DNA of 63,546 bases, the filler included, from Reticulomyxa filosa (Eukaryota > Protista > Foraminifera): assembly GCA_000512085.1 (NCBI GenBank). It is 20 parts of 20 records of this genome, joined end to end, with 100 filler letters (N's around TTAATTAATTAA, not from the genome) between each part and the next. Parts side by side here need not be neighbours in the genome. Positions count along the whole stretch, not along the records: positions 47,136 to 62,139 come from ASPP01005533.1; 19 more parts are not named here. One strand, written 5' to 3'. The notes under the pieces are model-generated. The model made no database searches. It saw nothing but the letters and a program-made list of their open reading frames with translations, and was not told the origin of the DNA. A program made the position numbers and the translations under genes. Within the stretch, counting starts at the first letter, position 1. Each line of letters begins with the position of its first letter. Shown piece after piece: positions 47,371-61,182 of the stretch.

Positions 47371-50323
47371 ATGACTTCTTTGAAAGAAACGCAACTCTTT
47401 CACATGTATAAGGACCTATTACATCAAATAAATAAAGCACAAAGCATAAAAGAATTGACAAGATTTATTACACTCTTCAGTTCCAAAGAACTGAAAGAAC
47501 TTATCATGAACAAGCTGAACGTAGAAATAGAAAAGGGTCAAAAGAACGAAAACAGCATTGAATTTTTTTCCATACAAGGCAAGATTCGTGATTTATATTT
47601 ACAAACGGCTTCATTTGATGAAATTTTACCAACAGCCGTGCAAGCGCATATTTTTTCTTTTTTGGATTATAATTCTCTTGAATATTTTCCTTTTCTGTCG
47701 AGATCAATTCATCGTACATTTTGTTTAAATCCTATCTTATTTGAAAAGGTGAAAAAAAACTTTTTTTTTTTTTTAACAAAACAAGACAAAATAAAATTAA
47801 AAAAAAAAGTATACGTTGGAATTTTTTGCATTCGGAGAAAATACTTTCCGGGAAAATATTTGGGAAAATACTCTCGAAAATATTTTAAAAGAAAATAGTT
47901 CCGAAAACAATACTTTCGAAGAAAATACTTTCAGAAAAAGAAGAAATATCAAACATAAAGGAAAGATAAAGAAGTTATGTGTTAAACATAAATCGGAATG
48001 TGTAGTGATTGGAATAGAAGATCCAAAAATATCAAATGGCAATGTAAGTACAGTAGATCAATTGGGTCAATTTCCTTGGTATAGCATTCGTAAATGGCAT
48101 GTGAATGGTACTCAATTACAACTATTATACTCATATTTTGCACAAAGACCAGTGCCACTTTATCAATTTTTGTTTGACTCCAGTTCAGATACACGTTGGA
48201 AAGAATTTGTATCAACTTGGAATGATTTTATTAAGAGTGAAGAGAGTCCATCTGAGAAATGGAACACATTAAATTACAGGGATTTGACCAGAATAAATCA
48301 TGGGCGTATTTACTATGGCCAAGAATTACTTGCACAAAATCATCAAATAGAATCACTTAAGGCTTACATCGATAAAAATATTTTAAAGCGACATGAGTAT
48401 GATTATGTCTCTGATCGTCCAATCTTTCATATCACATACGATACACCGAAGACAACATTTCGCTCTTCCCAATACAGACATAGGCCTAAAGGGCCCATCA
48501 GTGTCCAATCTCCTTTTCAATACAGTTTATAATTTATAGTTAATTTTTTGATATAATATACATAAATACGTGTTTATTGTATATGTATGTACATAGAGGA
48601 CTGGAAAGGTTTAGAAAAGGACTTGCGTGTGCATATACTAAATTTGAATGAAGAAATTTTTTCAAAAAAAGACAAAAACAAACAGTTTGGATATGTCGAT
48701 GATGCAGAAATAAGGTTCCAACAGTCAGTTGAACAGATACAGTATTTCTATGATCATATTTTGTGTATACGAGAATGGTTGGAATCTTTATTTGGATCTT
48801 CTGAAAACTTTAAATTTGGTCATAGTAATTCCACTAGCTTTCAAATAATAATAGTTAAAAAACAAGTCCCACTGAAAGTACACGAGAATGATACATATAA
48901 ACGGAACTCTTTGCAAGTGGGAGATGAATTTTTATATATTTGTAAAGAAGGACAATTAGCAATGAGTAATGCTACACAATATATTGTGTTTGGAGAATTG
49001 ATTGATTTCACAGATGAAAATCAAAATGAAAAAGAGATCAGCAATAACAAATCTGGAAATGGATGGAATATTATTGATCTATTGAGAAAAAATAACGAAA
49101 TTGAAGAACAACAACTTAGTGCAATAATTCCTAACATTTTTTTATTTTGGAAAAAGAAAATAGTTATTAATTATTATATTTTTTTGTTTTTTTACATTAA
49201 AAATAAAAGATATATGTATGTATATATAATAGAAATATGCAAAAGAACAAATCGATTTATTTATTGCAATGCTGGATAAAGCGCGCAAATCGATTCAATC
49301 ATTGGCAGTGACAAATACATTTGATCAACTAATAATTTTTCCAATACTTCCAAATTTAATACATTTACGTTTGAAACACATCAAAATCGGTAGCTGCTTC
49401 AATTCCATTAATGTGAAAGGATTGATGCCACAATTGAAAACGCTCACAGTTGAAAAATTGCTTATTAAATCATGTACATATTGTAATTGGCAACAAACTC
49501 TTGAAGCTGCTGGGTCATGCGATTTTAACCACAACAATGACTCTTTGTCAATATCTTCTTCATTTCCTTCCTTTGATCCCCAACAGAAGCAACAACAAGA
49601 TATTTCCGAAATTAAATTTCTTAATTATTTGCTACTATCTTGTCCAAATTTGTTAGCATTTAGTTATATCGCTGTAAAAATTAATCCAGAAGACACACTC
49701 AAAATTCCATCTACTGTGGAGTGGTTGAGGATAGAAGGCCAGAAATCAGAATTATGTGTTCAATTAGATTTGAGCCAATGCAAATGTATCAATGGATTCA
49801 GTTTAATTATATATTTTTACAAAAAAAAACATGAAATAATTAATAATAATTTAACCATAAACAAAAAGGTTGGGAATATTGTTTTATAAAATGGCCAACG
49901 GAAACAGTACTTAAAATTGGTTGGTTGAAAAATAATAATGGAGATATTTCATATTGGGATAATTTGTTATCATCCAACAAATGTTGTAATGTACAGCTTT
50001 GTGTATTACTAGTAGACCATATTATATTTGATTTTACATCTGATAACTCATTATTCTCTCAATCGCCTTTTGCAGACATTAAAAGGCTTAAACAAACTGT
50101 TGCAAAGAGATCAGGAATAGGTTATGACAATGTAGATTTATTATTTTCGAAAGACGAAGGTATTACCGTACCTAATTCTCTCCAGAAATTAATGTTTCAA
50201 AAAATTGCCGAAATTATGGGTATTCATAGTGCCAAAGTGAAGGAATATCAAAAATGGTTTAACATTGAAGAAGCTTATTGGATTTTCAATTTGTTTTCAG
50301 CTTATATTTTCAATGATATTTGA
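47371..50323 (+). CDS. F-box protein with C-terminal LRR-like region, multi-exon
   Basis: F-box-like SFDEILPTAVQAHIFSFLDYNSL...LSRSIHR. LRR-like LPNLIHLRL, MPQLKTLTV, CPNLLAFSY and LDLSQC. ORFs are joined by short AT-rich introns. Confidence 0.7.
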
Positions 50324-50760: not shown

Positions 50761-53700
50761 TTACATTTCATTCAAAATAATTTTCATTAAAGGTTCAATA
50801 CTTCTCTTTGAATCCAATTGAATAATGCCATTTTCAATGGCAGAAATGAATTTATCACAATCAAATTTTGCTTTTCTACGAATGACAGTGTTGCAATCAC
50901 TTCCAACGACAATATTATTTAAGGTAATTTTGTGCAACAATTCCATTCGATCTAATAAACGAGTTGGAAGTGAAATTAAAGCATGCTTTTGAGTAATTGT
51001 TAAACATCGTGCTAATGTTTCAATTGATGAATATTGTTCCATTGAATTCGCAAAAAATGTTGCCAATGCATTAATATTTGGTTTTTGTGTTTTATTATAA
51101 CTTGTTCCTGGTAGTGAAACACCAAGCATATCATCTTTCATAATGATTGGTAATTGTTGATCAATATTATCATTTTGAATCATGTGTGCATTTGAAAATA
51201 CATTATTTAATATTGAAATTATGGTATCGTAATATTCCTTTAATATGTTATTTTCTTCAATTAATTGCATAACTTGTTTTTTTTCATCATGTTCATTGTT
51301 GTCATTGATTTTTTCATCATTATTACGCGTATTTTCTAAGTGATAATCATTTGATAATGAATTATTCTCAATAGGTTTTTCCTCAAAATTTTTTTCTTCA
51401 GTTGATAACAATTGTTCCATTTCTATTTTTTTTCTTCATATTCATTCAATATATCTTTCTTTTCTTCTAAATATTCTAATTTTAGATTTTCATGGTGATG
51501 ATGTTTAATAATGTTTTCAAGTTTAATAATTTCAGAACACATCCAAATATTATCATCTTTCACAGTTTGCAATGCCATTGAAATATCTGAAATTGTCTTG
51601 ACTTCATTTAAATTGCTCATTAACATTAATGCCACTGATGCTTTATCACGAATGGTCGAATTTTGATCTTTTGATGCAATTTGTAATTGTTTCGAGACAA
51701 TATCAATCTCATTGGAATTTTGTTTATTATTATTAATCAGTAACTTTAAACATTTAATAATATTAATGGGTTGTTCATTATTCATAATATCATTTACCAT
51801 TTTATCAAATTTTATTAAAAATTGGAATGTATTATGTTTAATTTGTTCAATCAAACTTTGATTCGGAGAATGAAAATTATTACATTGATCATAATAAATA
51901 ACCTCAATTTGATGTAACAATAAATCATTTTGTAATGGATGGTAATGAAGAAATAATGCTTGTGGACAGCATTGAATAATTGTCGGAAATGATGTATTCG
52001 TAAGTATTAACTGCTTGAGTTTAGATTGTGAATTTGGAAGTATCATTTGGGCTAATCCTGTAGAATCAAGTATTGTGCATCCTTGAATAGCTAATATTGA
52101 TAACGCAGCGCTTCCTGTTTCAATTTTATTAATAGCGCAACAGCTATTAAGTTGTAATGATTCTAGATTTGGCGCTTTTAACATTAAACAAGTTAAAGCA
52201 GTAGCATTTATCATTTTCCATTGTTTTAAATAAGGCATTTCAAATAATATTTCTACATTTTTTAATTGCTTACAATTATTTGCTCGAAATGAAATTAATT
52301 TTGGCATTTCAATTTCAGATAATGTAATTAAACTAGATTGATCAAGAATTAATTTAATTAATGATGGAAATGCAAATGACAATTTTCCTTGTAATTGTGA
52401 ACAAGATTTTGCAATCAAAGTTTGCAATGTTTGACATTGTTTTGCAATTATACTTAAATCTTTGTCTTCAATCGTTGTATTGCTAATATCTAACCAAGTT
52501 AAATTGGATATTTCAGAAAATAAAATTCTAATATTCATACTGTCTATACCACGTAAAGATAATTCTTGAAAAGGATGTAACTGTATAATTTGTAATAATC
52601 TTAATTGTTGTTTGTCAGATAATTTGTTCCAATAGAAAGGAAATAGAGCTAGTTCGGAATCGCCTTTTAATATCAATGATTGATGTTCCATTGAAAGTAT
52701 TTCTTCAAATGTCTTAAAATTTCCCAAATACATTTCTTCAGATATTTTTTCTAATTGCTGTTGTTGATAACTCAATTGATTAATTTCTGTCAATGCTTCA
52801 GAGGGTGTTATTTTTAAAATGTCATTCACATGAATTCTATTTAATTGATATCTTTCTAATTGATTTAATCTTTGAACAGGATCTTTATATTGTTTTAACA
52901 CATCATTGTAAATGGCACCAATCTTTGGATGAAGTTTGATAAGGCATTGCAATCCTGTTATATCTGGATAATGTTGTAATAAAGTACGAAGTTTTAACCA
53001 TCGCTTATGTATAGCTGAAGCATCTCCTTTTTTAAAAGGTATTGGTATTGATATTGAATTGTCTTGATTATTCCATTGATAAGTTGTTTCAGATGAAAAT
53101 ATTTTTTTATATTCGTCATTTTGTACTTGTGCATCTCTAAATATAGATTCTAATGTTTGTTTTGCATCTAATAATAAAAATCTTTCTTTTGCAATTAAAT
53201 TTATTGGTTGATGCATATAGTCAAAACAAAATAAAATAGTTTTGATTTGTAATTGAAAATATTCATTGTTTTTATTTGGAATCCAATCAGGTAATAATAT
53301 GTTACTGTTGTTATTATTAATATTTATTAATATATTTTTTTCATTATTTAATTGTTTAATGACATAATTAATTGGCAAATCATTTTTCGGATTAATCAAT
53401 AAAGCAATGAATAACAATTCTGTATAATTTTGATGATCTAATTTATTTAATATATTTAATTCTTTGTCAAATACTTGTTGTAATGATGTAGATCCATGAA
53501 TTATTTCAGAACAAAGTATTGGTATTGAATTAGTATCGTCGTCATCATTGTTGTTATATTTTAAGCATGCCAATTCACTATGACATATTCCATGATTTAT
53601 TATTCTATAATAAAATTGTTCTATTAGATAATTTATTCCTGGCATTTCAGGACAAAATTGAATGCAAATAACTGGTAAGTCATTAGGTTTTAATTTTATT

Positions 53701-56700
53701 GGAATTTTACCTTTTTTTAATTTTCCACTTTCATCTAATAATTGATTAATGATATATTTTTTCAATGGTTTACCATTTCCAAGTAATGAACTAGTAAATG
53801 TAGGTTCATTCATTTCTGGTATTCTATCTTCTGTTAGTTCTTCAAGCATATTTTTCCATCTCTTATTTTCTTCTTTCCAAAATGTTGTTTCTCCACGTTT
53901 ATCTGGTAATCTATGTAATATTGTTAAAATATTATCTAGAAATCTTTGAATATCTTTATTTTCTTTTTGACGAAGAGTTAGGATTTGTCGAAATGCAATA
54001 CGAACTTGTATTCCATCCAACAATTGGTAAATATGTTGATACATTTTTAAATCGCGATGTTTCATTATCAACACATCAATAAGTCTTGATAGACTAGATT
54101 TATTATTTTCGATATCAATGCCTAATTCTTTTTCACAAGTTTCTAATACATTTTTTCTTTGTTTGTATGTTTCATTAAATGCAGGTCGTAATAACGTAAA
54201 CAATTGACAACGAGATATTGGTGTCACATTTGAAAAAGCCTCTTTACTTTGTTCTTTTCGAAGCCATTCTACAATAGATTCATCTGCATTTTTATTTATT
54301 TGCCCTTTTTCCGTTTTCCATTGTTGTATCCGTATATTCCATTGTGGATGATAAGTTTCAATCTCTTGTTGACATCTTTGTAGCCAATCTTTACATAATT
54401 GAGATTTATCAATCACTATTGCATTAAAATTCTCTTTCTCATGTATTTCAAGTTCTTTTATAAATATCAATCTTTCTTCAGGAATAATAATCAAATCTTT
54501 ACATATTTCTAATATCTCTTGTTGTAAATTCGATTGAATACAATGCATTGCCCAATCCGAATTAACAATTGATTCCAAGTATTCCACTGATTCAGCTTAC
54601 CAATAGCAAGATTATATCTTTGGTTTTGAGCTTGTAATTCCAAAGTTAAACTTTTCATATCATGAGGATTCAAGCAATAATAAAATTTGTAATAATCAAT
54701 TGCCTCATCTATTTCATTGAATTTTGCATTTGTCAATATGTCATCGAATGTATTTATTTTAAACATTAATGGCTTTTTCAAAAATAATGGATTTTTTTCC
54801 TTTTCATTCCAATGCTTTATATTTTGATATAACGCCAATAAACTTAAGTACATTTGCTTCAAAGTATCTTGCTCTTTGGAATTTAAGCGATAGGGCTGAA
54901 CTTCCGAGAGGAGCATTTGTGTATTTGCGTTTGTATTTGTATTTGGTTGATACATCCATTCGCAAGATGATTTGTAATGCATTTGTGTTTTAATGCGAAA
55001 TTCTAATGCTCTGTTGATTACATCTTTTAGTAATTGAATGGTTTTATCGCAAAGTACTTTTTCTTTTTGCAATTCATTCAATTGGCCTATTGCATGTCGA
55101 ATCTTTAATCCATGATATAGACTTAATGCCAATGTAATTTGCTGAGGTAATATATACAGGTGTCGTTTTGCATGAAATCCAATATATCCACGTTTTAATG
55201 TGGATGATATTTGTGATAATGGATTAAGATTTTCTACGGCCTGTTGAATAATCTCCAATGAAATATTTTCTTGTAATCGATGCGGTTTCAGCCAGCTTCC
55301 TAAATTTGTATTCAAGCATTGGCGTAGCGATTTTTGATACATTTTAAATAGTTGTTCTGATCCAACAAGAGGCCGACAGCTTAATAAGACTTGACGATCT
55401 ACAGACTCCAATTATGGCTTCTTTGAATATTAGCCAAATTGATTGGCGTGTGTAATAATAGATCTGGAGTGCGATGTGGCATATAAAAATAATCTGCATG
55501 TAATCCATCACGCATAACTTGTGGTGTTTTATTACAGGTAGTAAATAAAGTTAGTAATTCTTCCGGTGTCTCTCCTAAACCAATTAATACGATTTCAAAA
55601 ATTGAACTTACATTTATAAAATACGTACGATTTTCAATGTTGTCTTCTTCGATCAAACAAGCACATTCAATATCAGAATAGGCCGTTGCTTCTTTACGTC
55701 CAAATGACCCTAGCAGCAATAACGTATATTGACAAGGAGGTGGAGATAATCTGTCGATAATAAAACTCCAAACTTTTGCTAAAAATCCGCATATATCTTT
55801 TGTGATTTTTTTTGGTCGCTTTTGACCGAAGAGCTATTTTTATCCATTGTTGTAAATTGCTGCCGAATTTTCATTAAAGAATTGATCCAGTTATCATACA
55901 ATTCGAATGGAATACCTTTTGAGTTGGCAAGATTTGCGACAGAATTCTGATTCGTTGACTCGCTGCATATTTTTGCCATAATAAGGCATTTGGCAAATTG
56001 AAATAATTCAGTGCCGTGATCCAAGCGATCGTCGCATAGCCCATGGCTCGACGATAAAGTGATGACTTTATCTCAATACGCTCAGCCCAAAATAAATGTG
56101 ACAAAATTGCATCACTGAGTGATAACAGACATAAAATAGCAAGTTGGGGAACAGATTGAACCGTTTGGACAATCAATGACTCATATTCAGAACAACATAA
56201 CGACAATTGATTCGAATGATATTCGATTGTCTCTGTTTTCGATAGTGATTTTTTCGGAAAAGATAATCGAATTGCTTGTGCGCGGTCATACTTAGCTTGC
56301 AATGATATTTGAATGTCGGAATTAATAGCAAGATTACTTTGCTTGGGCCAATCAATAGGCGGCTGCACATATGGAACTAATTCGATATGCTCGCACTTTA
56401 TTAATTCATGTTCAGGACGATCACCATTAATTGTAACCATTGATATATCTGATCCATGTTTTAAAAGCCATACAATTGCTTTCATTTGTCCATGACGACA
56501 TGCTTTATGCAATGCTGTATATCCATAATTGTTTGCTCCATTTATATTTAATCCCGGTATTCTATTAAATATCCATTGCAATATCTTATATTGTCCAGCT
56601 ACTGACACTGCATGCAAAATATTACTTCCTTCTTCATTTTCTTCTTTTGTTAATTCAATTATTGCTTCCAAAGATATGTTTTCATTCAACCATTCTATTG

Positions 56701-56980
56701 CTTCTTCCACTTTTTTATTTTGTTCCAGTCCATCTGCCCAATAAAATAAAATATTTTGCTTCATACTGTCACGTGTTTGTAATAATGTCCCTTCCATTTT
56801 TAGCAATTCTGAAGCGCAATTCCATTTCCCAAGTCGCAGTGCATACAATATCAATTTTTGTGAACATTTCATTGGCTCTTTTTGCTGAGTAAGCCAATTC
56901 AAGAGTTCCTTTGGCTTGTCTTGCTTTATCCAGTCTTCTCCTGTTGGAGATGCAGGTATTTCTTTAGGTTTAGTTGCCAT
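50761..56980 (-). CDS. Giant (~2,070 aa) ankyrin + DUF294/GlnD-type nucleotidyltransferase + PI3/4K-like + LRR + HEAT protein, split by five -1 frameshifts
   Basis: Six abutting or overlapping ORFs. Ankyrin: GYTALHKACRHGQ. NTase: PPCQYTLLLLGSFGRKEATAYSDIE. Kinase-like: PEMPG...SEL...ALLINP. LRRs: LxxLxLxxC. HEAT-like: KDQNSTIRDKASVAL. Confidence 0.78.
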
Positions 56981-57375
56981 CTTGTAAAAGAGAGGAAAAT
57001 TCACTTCAAAAAACAAGTTAAAGAGAAATGATGATGATGATGATGATGATGCTGCTCAACAAAAAAAAACTTGATTTGTTTGATATCACTCCTTTTTTTT
57101 TGAACTAGGCAAAAAAAAAACCACTCCGATTTACATTGCAAAAATGCATTTAAATAAGTTCTCACTTTACATTTCTGAAAGTATCTTTTTTGATTCTCAT
57201 AATCAAAATTGGATTCGCAAGATTGTTATCAAATATGGTTATGCTATTTGTTTCAACGCAATATGTATTAATTTTATTCAAAAGTGTAAATCGCTAAAAG
57301 GAGATTTTAATTATGGAAGTGATTGAAGAAAAAAAAAATTGTTTAACCATATGAATAGATTTACACAATTACATA

Positions 57376-59698
57376 TTAAGCAAAGAAATTAACATTATTT
57401 GTTGTAAATATTCTGTTTGTGATAATATTCCATATTCGAATTGTTCCATCCCTAGAAGATGATACAATAGTATTATCATCTATTGAAATATCTATTCCTG
57501 TTATATCATCATGATGTCCTTTTAATCTTTGTTTTTCTACTCCTAAGTTTACATCCCACAATCGAACTGTATAATCTGTTAAACCTGAAATAATAGTTTG
57601 TCCATCTGATGAAAATTTTACATCTGTTACTCTAGCAGGATAGCCACTCATTTTTTTCAATTGTGTTCTTGATTTTGCATCCCATATTCGAATTGTCCTA
57701 TCTGTTGAACAAGATACAAGTTTGGAGCCATCAGGTGAAAATTGAACTTTCATTACATAACTAGAATGTCCTAGCATTTTATTTACTTTATTATTTGATC
57801 TCACATTCCAAATTCTAATTGCAAAATCATCTGACGCTATTGCAATTTGTTGGCCATTTGGTGAAAAATTTACATCATTGATATGATCTAAATTTTCATT
57901 TAATCTTTTTATTTCCTTTCCAGACTCTACACTCCATAATCTTACAGTTTTATCTAATGAGCCAGAAACAATAATTTTTCCATTTGGTGAAAATTGAACA
58001 CTTCTTACATGACGTGTGTGTCCATTTAATTGTCGTATTTCAGTACAAGATTCTACATCCCATAATCGAATAGTATTATCATTAGAACATGACACAACCA
58101 TATTTCCATCTGGTGAAAATATTGCATTTTTAACATGATCAAAATGTCCTTTTAGTTCTTGAAGTTCATGTCCTGATGTAATATCCCATATTTTGATAGT
58201 TTTATCATTTGAAGTTGAAATAATTTTGGTGCAATCTGGTGAAAATTTTATGCTATTCACCGAATTGAAATGTCCTTGAAATACTTTAAATGGTTTAAAA
58301 TAATTTTGCTATATATTTGTGTGTATATAAGTATATATTATCAATAAAAAAAAAAAATAAATAAATAAATAATAATAATAATAATAAATACATACAAGAA
58401 TATATCGTAAAATAATAAGATTAAATTCATCAATCCATCCTAATTCATTAATTTCTATTGAATTCATCCAATATTTAATTATCATTGCAATTTCTTTTTT
58501 TTTCTTTTTTTTATTTGAATTTTATTGATACATTCTTTTACAAAAAAATAAAAATAATACATTTTTGCTTAACTTTTAAGTATTTAATATCTAATCCTTT
58601 GTTCATCTCTTCTAATTCTATTCTTATTTCTTCAAAATCTGCTATTTCTTTATTTTCTATCATCCATTTTTGATTTCCTTCTGTGAAATCACTTATTTTC
58701 ATTTTTATATGTGTTAATAATTTATTATTTGTATCATCTACTCCAAGAATATGTACAAATAAATTATCTTCAGTTAATATTGCAATTGGATATTTCAATG
58801 GAATTGATAAAATTTCTTTGCATTTCATCCATTTGTTATTAATGATTGAATATTTATGGATTTGATTTGAAGTACTACCATAAAAGAGACATCCACCAAA
58901 AAATAAAATGGAATTTTGAATATAACTATATGCATAATAATGAAATGATTTAATAGTGTCACATACACGTAATTTATGAAATTGAAATGTATTGAGTTTT
59001 TCATCATATTCAATTGATAATCCAATCTCAAAACAAAATAACCACATTTCATCCTTCTCTTTGTTTCCATTTTCATTTTCATTCCTTTTTACAAAACAAT
59101 GAAAACTTATATTAATATCAATTGGGAGTATATCATGTTTAATAAATTGAAATTTAGTTAAATCAAATACACTAATATTTTTTGGATTATATGTAATGAA
59201 TAATAAATTATTATTATTTCCACCAATTACTGCACGTACTCCATTATAATTATCTTCATCTTTTGCAATTTGAACTGGATTATTATTATTGTCAATAAAT
59301 GGAAACCATCGATTGTAATTCTTTTTTTTTATAATTTCATTGTCATTATCCCAAGCACTTATATATTTCATTATCAATGAATGTCTTTGTTTTCCACCAA
59401 AAGATAACAAAGTAATCTCATTTATATGTTTGTTTTTGTTATTATTATCTACAAGTTTTACTACACAATGTCCGTCTACGTTAATACTATTTGGATATAA
59501 ACAGAAAAGCTTGTATTCATTTTTGAGTATATGATAGGAATAACATGCCCTTCTTTCATACCCTGCAAAAATAAGGATTTCGTGTTTGTATGCTACACTT
59601 TGAGTGTTTTGTAGTGGAATTGGAAATGTAGCCAAAGTTTCAAAAGGAGCTGTGTGTATATTTGCAATCTCTTCCGTTTTCGTAATACTTTGACGCAT
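57376..59698 (-). CDS. Double-propeller protein: kelch-like exon + linker mini-exon + WD40 exon
   Basis: Kelch exon ~58573-59698. Linker exon 58396-~58503 reads KKKEIAMIIKYWMNSIEINELGWIDEFNLIILRYIL. WD40 exon 57376-58308 has ~7 GH..WD repeats. Introns are phase 0. Confidence 0.88.
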
Positions 59699-59994: not shown

Positions 59995-61182
59995 ATGAAT
60001 ACAAGAAATTCTGCTGCAGTACTTTTAGCCAAGAAGAAATATTCGGTACAAATAAATATGTTGATGTAGTTTAACAACAATAAAATGTTCTTTTTTTTAA
60101 ACAAATTAAAACACAGAGCGAAAGAGAAAGCACTTTAATAATAGAGAATTGGATTCGAAATTTGGAAATTTATTGGGGATGGATCAATGATTTTAACAAA
60201 ATTATTGCACAATACGTTACGTTTGTTTATTATGATATTTAAATATTTTTTTTTTTTTTTAACTTTTTTTTTGTAAAATATTAAAAAATGTGACTAGAGT
60301 AAGTATTTCAAACAATTAAAAGTACTTCAAGGACATTCACATTATGTGAACAGTGTAACATTTTCACGAGATAGTACCAAAGTTCTTTCTTCTTCATTTG
60401 ATAAGACATCTCGCATATGGGATATAATAACAGAACATGAAATTCAAGTATTTAAAAATCATTTATTTTGGGTTAATTATGCACAATTTTCACCAGATTA
60501 TAATATGATTTTATCTTGTTCAAAAGATAAAACTATTCGATTATGTGATATTAGAACAGGAAAAGAAATAAGAAGATTTGAAGGACATTCCAATGATATT
60601 ACAAAATCAAATTTTTCATTTGATGGTCATACTATTATCTCAAGTTCATTAGATCGCACCATTCGACTTTGGGATGTGAAATCTGGACAAGAGATTAAAA
60701 GAATGGTAGGACATTTAGAAGGTGTAACCAGTGCTCAATTTTCACCAAATGGACAAATAATTGTATCATCTTCCTATGACAAAACAGTTGCAATATGGGA
60801 TATACAATCTGGTGAAAAATTACAAGAATTGAATGGTCATTCAGATGCTGTATTAAAAGCACAATTTTCATCAGATGGTAATATTATTGTGTCTTGTTCA
60901 TATGATAAAACTATTTGCATATGGGATGTCATGTCAGGAAAAGAAATTAAAACATTAAAAGGACATTTAGGTGGTTTAAGAGATGTACAATTTTCACCTG
61001 ATAATCAGATTATTGCTTCTGCATCATCTGATAAAACTGTTCGTTTGTGGGATGTTCATTCAGGGAAAGAAATGCAAAAATTAGAAGGACATTTAGATTG
61101 GGTAACTTCTGTTGCTTTTTCTAAAGATGGACAAACTATTGTATCATCTTCTCTTGATAAAACAATCCGATTGTGGGGATGA
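59995..61182 (+). CDS. WD40-repeat protein with linker mini-exon (3 exons)
   Basis: MNTRNSAAVLLAKKKYS|SERESTLIIENWIRNLEIYWGWINDFNKIIAQY (60117-60215)|SKYFKQLKVLQGH..., then 7 regular WD40 repeats (60298-61182). Confidence 0.92.

Follow-up and report, generated by a model that had tools for sequence, protein, structure and literature searches.

A giant intronless gene family of Reticulomyxa filosa combining a DrrA/GlnE-type nucleotidyltransferase, a PI4KII-like kinase fold and repeat domains: a probable legacy of intracellular bacteria

Introduction

How does a giant gene without introns, built of repeats around two enzyme folds, come to lie between intron-bearing genes of a foraminiferan, and what could it do there? 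The question is raised by a minus-strand gene of the giant freshwater amoeba Reticulomyxa filosa (assembly GCA_000512085.1), found at positions 50761-56980 of the window, i.e., the whole stretch of DNA analysed (63,546 nucleotides, filler included). It encodes ankyrin (ANK) repeats, a nucleotidyltransferase (NTase) domain, a kinase-like fold, leucine-rich repeats (LRR), and a HEAT-like repeat. The explanation retained here, with somewhat better than even confidence, is that it belongs to a nuclear family whose ancestor was a giant effector-like protein encoded by an intracellular bacterium, a family amplified after transfer, kept by selection, and AMPylating proteins at membranes.

Architecture of the gene

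The order of the gene is ANK, NTase, helical C-terminal domain, linker, pseudokinase, LRR, HEAT, and tail, with the following features:

50761-56980, minus strand: whole intronless gene, ATG at 56980 and stop at 50761; 2,074 codons if each of the five frame breaks is read as X
56423-56800, minus strand: ankyrin repeats (Pfam Ank_4, E 3.8e-13), core at 56647-56423, upstream part degenerate
55402-55830, minus strand: Pol-beta-fold nucleotidyltransferase core of the DUF294/GlnE/DrrA type, as judged from motif and third Asp, Pfam, and a paralogue model
54815-55399, minus strand: helical domain accompanying the NTase, of the DUF294_C (HEPN-like) kind (Pfam E 0.05; structure of a paralogue model), lower bound approximate
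53810-54815, minus strand: helical linker of no known family, conserved across the R. filosa copies
52850-53807, minus strand: PI4KII-like kinase fold (from a paralogue model), catalytically decayed in the window copy
51996-52571, minus strand: leucine-rich repeats (Pfam E 0.003 in the window copy, 2e-6 in a paralogue)
51612-51710, minus strand: the single HEAT-like repeat left (8-11 in paralogues L001, L003, and L006)
50761-51300, minus strand: C-terminal domain of ~180 residues with a hydrophobic stretch, conserved among the R. filosa copies only

The gene was searched piece by piece, scripts reading through with X at each break. An annotated R. filosa protein contains the long frame 54596-51426 identically. 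In paralogue L006 the same order is read without interruption for 2,355 codons, from its start to the end of the HEAT repeats, and the domains therefore form one protein. For the tail (50761-51300), neither a Pfam family nor an Atlas match was found. A weak match to the pore domain MCAfunc (E 3e-4) is ascribed to chance; it is absent from the paralogues.

A sequence-only reading of this DNA had proposed an intronless, essentially continuous coding sequence with ankyrin repeats, LRRs, and a HEAT-like repeat. All three repeat types are recovered, and alignment to six paralogues reveals no intron-sized insertion in the window copy. The continuity holds in that no in-frame stop occurs, and fails at five one-base frame breaks (see below). 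The same reading missed the further copies: the gene belongs to a set of at least seven paralogues.

The nucleotidyltransferase domain

The NTase domain harbors the motif GSFGRKEATAYSDIE at 55710-55666, of pattern G-S-x10-D-x-E and intact in the window copy. A third conserved Asp, at 55494-55492 on a later strand, shows no variation in alignment A5 and almost none in A2; it would be the equivalent of DrrA D150. The Pfam match to DUF294 reaches 32.1 bits for a cut-off of 21 (E 1.2e-7), while that to DUF294_C is weak (E 0.05).

The NTase model of a paralogue (predicted local distance difference test, pLDDT, 89) has its best match in Legionella DrrA/SidM, with Z 28.5 over 309 residues and a root-mean-square deviation of 3.8. 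The two GlnE halves come next (Z 24.4 and 23.7). Among all other chains the highest Z is 8.9; Hailong HalB has 6.3, and the MNT antitoxins are likewise far below. A helical C-terminal domain is packed on the core in this model and is covered by the DrrA and GlnE matches. A plain sequence search of the PDB returned no real match. At the sequence level, a profile of the family recovers DrrA (E 2.8e-14), and the motifs are in register.

The domain is thus, by motif, profile, and predicted fold, an NTase of the DUF294/GlnE/DrrA type. This agrees with the GSxGRxExxxxSDxD/E-type signature from which such an enzyme had first been proposed, and the DUF294_C-like helical region proposed with it, weak in Pfam, is backed by the paralogue structure. 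Because both the model and the profile match DrrA, which adenylylates a tyrosine of Rab1b, we infer that protein AMPylation is the best candidate for the activity of this domain.

The kinase-like domain

The kinase model of a paralogue (pLDDT 83) matches type II phosphatidylinositol 4-kinase (PI4KII) alpha best, with Z 17.3, the next family being at 12.7. CotH, ATM, Vps34, and actin-fragmin kinase are found among the lower-ranked matches (12-13). Foldseek and VIA both rank PI4KII first for this model, the nearest Atlas structures are plant PI4-kinases, and the language-model neighbours of the kinase include LepB_N and actin-fragmin kinase.

The PI3/4K-like block described in the sequence-only reading therefore exists as a fold at 53807-52850, but the window copy has lost the catalytic residues: the beta-3 Lys is replaced by Gln (53660), the catalytic-loop Asp by Asn (53384), and the metal-binding Asp by Asn (53318). 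All three are kept in L001-L004, in L006, and in the bacterial kin. Otherwise invariant sites are changed in the window copy at 43 of 162 positions of the kinase (27%) vs 14 of 179 positions of the NTase and linkers (7-8%; Fisher p 4e-6), and the decay is biased from GC to AT (60 vs 17). Sixty amino-acid changes have accumulated in the kinase without a stop, where 6.1 stops would be expected (P 0.002); the gene was therefore still translated, and under selection, while its kinase died. Judged from its residues, the kinase of the window copy is a pseudokinase, and its decay is specific to the domain.

Paralogue L004 (L004:1-6757, plus strand) displays the opposite pattern. Its NTase motif is destroyed, with 25% of the invariant sites changed (p 1.5e-4), and its kinase residues are kept; this copy is divergent throughout. 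The reciprocal catalytic loss between the two copies, unseen in the sequence-only reading, is the most informative result on function, and provides a natural experiment as to which of the two activities is required by the host.

The paralogue family

At least seven copies with the same domain order are found in this assembly, i.e., the window gene and L001-L006, and a fragment (P0010) suggests that there are more. They share 47-69% protein identity. The ratio of nonsynonymous to synonymous rates (dN/dS), computed over the whole gene for pairs with unsaturated synonymous sites, is 0.19-0.31. The family is under purifying selection. None of the seven copies has introns. The HEAT repeats number one in the window copy and L004, and 8-11 in L001, L003, and L006, and the GC content at third codon positions (GC3) ranges from 0.20 in the window copy to 0.49 in L004.

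Proposed mechanism

In the mechanism proposed here, the ANK, LRR, and HEAT repeats would bind a partner or a target attached to a membrane. Where the kinase is intact, its PI4KII-like fold may phosphorylate a phosphoinositide, or else a protein, on endomembranes or phagosomes. AMP would then be moved from ATP to a hydroxyl of a target protein by the DrrA-like domain; if DrrA is a guide, the acceptor would be a Tyr in a small GTPase involved in trafficking. The window copy may be a dedicated nucleotidyltransferase, the pseudokinase serving as a scaffold or a regulatory remnant, and its five breaks would most likely be assembly errors or very recent. The host use, the weakest step, is probably the control of membrane traffic around engulfed or resident bacteria. 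R. filosa being a bacterivore with a resident symbiont, control of the phagosome or symbiont vacuole would be the likeliest form of it; the organism has been sequenced along with a Midichloriaceae (Rickettsiales) symbiont (10.1101/2022.10.13.511287).

Several points weigh against this explanation. The structures are predictions for paralogues rather than for the window copy. Identity is 16% to DrrA and 10% to PI4KII, and a common fold does not fix the substrate. The breaks are judged from the assembly, as the public runs consist of short contigs identical to it, none of which spans a break. To these are added the assumption behind the stop test and the topology of both trees, given below with their values.

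A possible, if doubtful, variant is that the family serves host surveillance. The variable repeats would recognise symbiont or pathogen molecules, and the dead-kinase and dead-NTase copies would act as mutual partners or decoys. For a defence role the support is circumstantial, namely the variable repeat number and one neighbour, an RNF213 (mysterin)-like AAA+ gene (L001:3-5190, plus strand) that matches human RNF213 at E 6e-61 and lies immediately upstream of one paralogue. In animals, RNF213 acts as a ubiquitin ligase against bacteria. If surveillance were the true role, the family would be a host-encoded AMPylase class beside FICD and SelO, turned against bacteria of the type from which it came.

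Frame breaks

The window gene is composed of six reading-frame pieces connected through five one-base breaks, without any in-frame stop. Two of the five lie in or beside runs of eight A:

55920-55930, minus strand: frame break 1 (one base), near 55925
55785-55833, minus strand: frame break 2, within a stretch where two open frames overlap; eight consecutive A lie in it
55399-55410, minus strand: frame break 3, near 55402
54553-54562, minus strand: frame break 4, near 54557
51420-51435, minus strand: frame break 5, near 51425, where eight A follow one another

The seven copies together exhibit ~29 breaks in ~43 kb, with either sign and at unshared positions; the count of in-frame stops in their aligned parts is 0. 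At least one break is found in six of the seven, and L002 alone has 14. About 6-7% of random substitutions would create a stop in these copies. If decay were neutral, with five substitutions for each break, 8.7 stops would be expected; none is seen (P 2e-4), a value that assumes a substitution-to-indel ratio and becomes, at a ratio of 2, 0.03 for all copies and 0.5 for the window copy. Because ~29 unshared breaks are accompanied by no in-frame stop, assembly error is a likelier cause than recent pseudogenisation. Introns at the breaks are rejected, as these are one-base differences from the paralogues with no intron-sized insertion. Programmed frameshifting is also rejected, since positions and signs differ among copies. 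Apparent breaks near residues 1027-1056 were dropped, as they come from the gene model of reference P0005.

With the same origin, the window copy, and perhaps most copies, might nevertheless be a recently dead pseudogene, its breaks being real, with birth and death after a functional period. Its five breaks, decayed kinase, and loss of most HEAT repeats fit such a history, as do the drift to AT in GC3 and in the kinase, the presence of breaks in all copies but one, and their absence from ~3 kb of adjoining kelch and WD40 reading frames. The R. filosa genome paper is also said to report many pseudogenes. We consider this unlikely, however, for no copy has a nonsense change, the kinase decayed while its frame stayed open, and the NTase is conserved in the window copy as much as in the others. 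Moreover, the breaks of L002 are clustered and resemble those of a poor-quality consensus.

Relatives and origin

The closest relatives of the same domain order are bacterial. P0158 (ANK-NTase-kinase-HEAT) is uninterrupted and located on a contig of three giant tandem genes with Shine-Dalgarno-like sites. The gene directly upstream of it (L007:2182-9978, plus strand; 2,598 residues) encodes ANK, NTase, and a catalytically decayed kinase, so that an intact and a dead kinase stand side by side in a bacterial tandem. P0159/P0160 (ANK-NTase-kinase-LRR-CBUA0006_C) are also uninterrupted, with Shine-Dalgarno-like sites, beside insertion sequences. They originate from a Harvard Forest soil mini-metagenome, of which the medium-quality bin is gammaproteobacterial with matching GC. 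The study of this soil reported many Legionellales and Chlamydiae (PMC7065516), and the two contigs would belong to this bin and to the Legionellales. The soil bacterium possesses at least four ANK-NTase-kinase-LRR-CBUA0006_C genes (L008:10001-16927, L010, L011, and L012), one with a doubled kinase-LRR unit; a TIR-NACHT-TPR gene near them carries the same CBUA0006_C end. NTase-kinase-LRR proteins are found in Chlamydiae as well (WP_194848190.1, Ca. Neptunochlamydia vexilliferae).

Many rows of the trees have no taxon label. In the kinase trees the R. filosa copies form one clade, sister to the P0158-P0160 bacteria at 100/99-100. The next branch is eukaryotic (P0161), so that the direction of transfer is not rooted and the relation is one of sisterhood, not nesting. 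That branch consists of an ANK-kinase-kinase-LRR gene without introns (L009:10001-16300, plus strand), whose kinases belong to this family, on a contig marked as eukaryotic by a Ras gene with short GT-AG introns, Cut8, and a class C G-protein-coupled receptor. It probably represents another, independent eukaryotic carrier; a single eukaryotic clade uniting it with R. filosa is rejected for the kinase (approximately unbiased, AU, test, p 0.0002). The NTase tree puts the R. filosa clade on a long unresolved stem, unjoined to the bacteria that are its sisters in the kinase tree. In this tree Branchiostoma groups with Neochlamydia at 100/99, and a clade shared with R. filosa is rejected (AU p 0.024).

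The Branchiostoma proteins (P0006-P0008) are TPR proteins with three DUF294 NTase domains, and likely reflect a separate acquisition in an animal. A plasmid record of Neochlamydia sp. S13 (NZ_AP017978.1, 231 kb) contains eleven matches to the NTase region; the NTase family can therefore sit on mobile DNA in amoeba symbionts. No rhizarian or foraminiferan orthologue outside R. filosa is present among the best 150 matches from 1.84 billion representatives. Pattern scans of GTDB for kinase and NTase, and a viral scan, returned nothing; these scans are insensitive and their blanks show no absence.

Transfer from an intracellular bacterium appears to be the simplest reading, since the NTase family is bacterial and introns are absent. 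The horizontal acquisition suggested in the sequence-only reading stands as far as the same-order relatives and the kinase sister group are concerned, whereas nesting within bacteria is obtained for neither domain.

Alternatively, the family might be eukaryotic, or old and patchily inherited, the bacteria having taken it from a protist host or domains having moved back and forth. All three repeat types (ANK, LRR, and HEAT), like the PI4KII fold, are eukaryote-like, the nearest Atlas structures are plant PI4-kinases, and the related gene on the intron-bearing L009 contig branches next to R. filosa and the bacteria. This is rendered improbable by the lack of introns in all seven copies of an intron-rich genome, the mostly bacterial NTase family, the rejection of a single eukaryotic clade for the kinase and, with Branchiostoma, for the NTase, and the missing rhizarian orthologues in the search above.

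Comparison with known systems

DrrA AMPylates a Tyr of Rab1b (PMC3710099, PMC12409994). The predicted R. filosa NTase resembles DrrA/SidM of Legionella pneumophila (PDB 6yx5, 3nku) in its two-part fold, a pol-beta core with a helical domain, and in the aligned D-x-D/E motif. It differs by a D-x-E instead of D-x-D, by its fusion partners (ANK, kinase, LRR, and HEAT, where DrrA has guanine-nucleotide exchange and lipid-binding domains), and by being encoded in multiple copies in a eukaryotic nucleus. Its likeness to GlnE, GlnD, and DUF294 proteins lies in the Pfam score and the GlnE matches; in contrast to these, the R. filosa gene has no ACT, HD, CBS, or cNMP domain and no link to nitrogen regulation.

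Neochlamydia NEX2 proteins (F-box/OTU - DUF294 - TPR) are likewise expanded, in an amoeba symbiont (PMC4209131), with DUF294 among eukaryote-like repeats. However, they have no kinase, and their NTases group with Branchiostoma; in the window gene Pfam detects ANK and LRR, and neither F-box nor TPR. The kinase fold is shared with type II PI 4-kinases (PI4KII-alpha/beta), PI4KII-alpha being closest, and with the bacterial PI-kinase-fold effectors LepB_N, MavQ, and CtkA; unlike PI4KII, the window copy is devoid of the catalytic Lys and of two Asp. P0158, P0159/P0160, and the chlamydial NTase-kinase-LRR proteins show the same domain order, the kinases of P0158-P0160 being ~40-45% identical to those of R. 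filosa. These bacterial proteins are uncharacterised, and their C-termini differ from those of R. filosa (CBUA0006_C in P0159/P0160). The Branchiostoma TPR-DUF294 proteins (e.g., XP_019620734.1) are also eukaryotic nuclear proteins joining this NTase family to repeats, but have TPR, several NTase copies, and no kinase, and form a separate lineage.

The idea of an undescribed system is thereby narrowed, as DUF294-repeat fusions are known in Neochlamydia (PMC4209131) and present in Branchiostoma. A literature search, with the genome paper outside its range, found no description of the NTase-kinase fusion or of the R. filosa family.

The origin being the same, the NTase could instead be a uridylyltransferase, a maker of second messengers, or a toxic executor held in check by the repeats, in the manner of nucleotide-binding leucine-rich-repeat (NLR) proteins. 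GlnD-type nucleotidyltransferases uridylylate, the second acidic residue is Glu in the R. filosa family and Asp in DrrA, repeat number differs among copies, and an RNF213-like gene adjoins one paralogue. This is quite improbable, as all of the nearest solved structures belong to protein adenylyltransferases (DrrA and both GlnE halves, Z 23-28), far above HalB and the MNT antitoxins. Furthermore, Pfam finds no NACHT/NB-ARC NTPase in any gene piece or in paralogue P0157, and PADLOC, which matches only ANK and HEAT parts, gives no convincing hit.

If the AMPylating effector-derived family is real, its implications are several. FICD and SelO are the eukaryotic AMPylases, and more are expected (2025 review, PMC12409994); a selected, amplified, nuclear DrrA/GlnE-type family would be a concrete candidate for another class. 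It would also be a case of a host retaining a symbiont effector, and directs attention to a family of giant effector-like proteins in bacteria that has not been described. Legionella uses phosphoinositide phosphorylation on its vacuole. It also AMPylates Rab proteins (PMC3710099), and the fusion would unite these two vacuole activities in one protein.

Genomic neighbours

The gene was described as embedded among host genes, which is confirmed by its two flanks, whose introns are GT-AG and AT-rich:

47371-50323, plus strand: F-box gene (F-box E 0.008) with spliceosomal-type introns, e.g., ~47749-47808
57376-59698, minus strand: kelch-WD40 gene (Pfam) with GT-AG introns between its two parts

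The setting is thus one of intron-bearing eukaryotic genes rather than a bacterial genome with a secretion system, as for an injected effector. Paralogue L004 adjoins a histone H2A gene. Upstream of the R. filosa copies the sequence is T-rich and has no Shine-Dalgarno site, unlike that of the bacterial kin. Because the neighbours of the copies are eukaryotic, it is very improbable that DNA of the Midichloriaceae symbiont or another bacterium was mis-joined into host contigs: the joint sequencing, the intronless genes, and junctions unbridged by the short contigs of the public runs would fit it, but copies lie beside clearly eukaryotic genes on at least three separate contigs (window, L001, and L004), GC3 spreads over 0.20-0.49 with the window copy drifted to host-like AT richness, and the upstream sequences are not of the bacterial type.

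A second seven-bladed WD40 gene lies at window 60346-61182 (plus strand), divergent from the kelch-WD40 gene; it is typical of the repeat-gene expansions of the R. filosa genome. A trinucleotide microsatellite of eight CAT units on the minus strand (window 57029-57052) is located ~50 bases upstream of the start codon.

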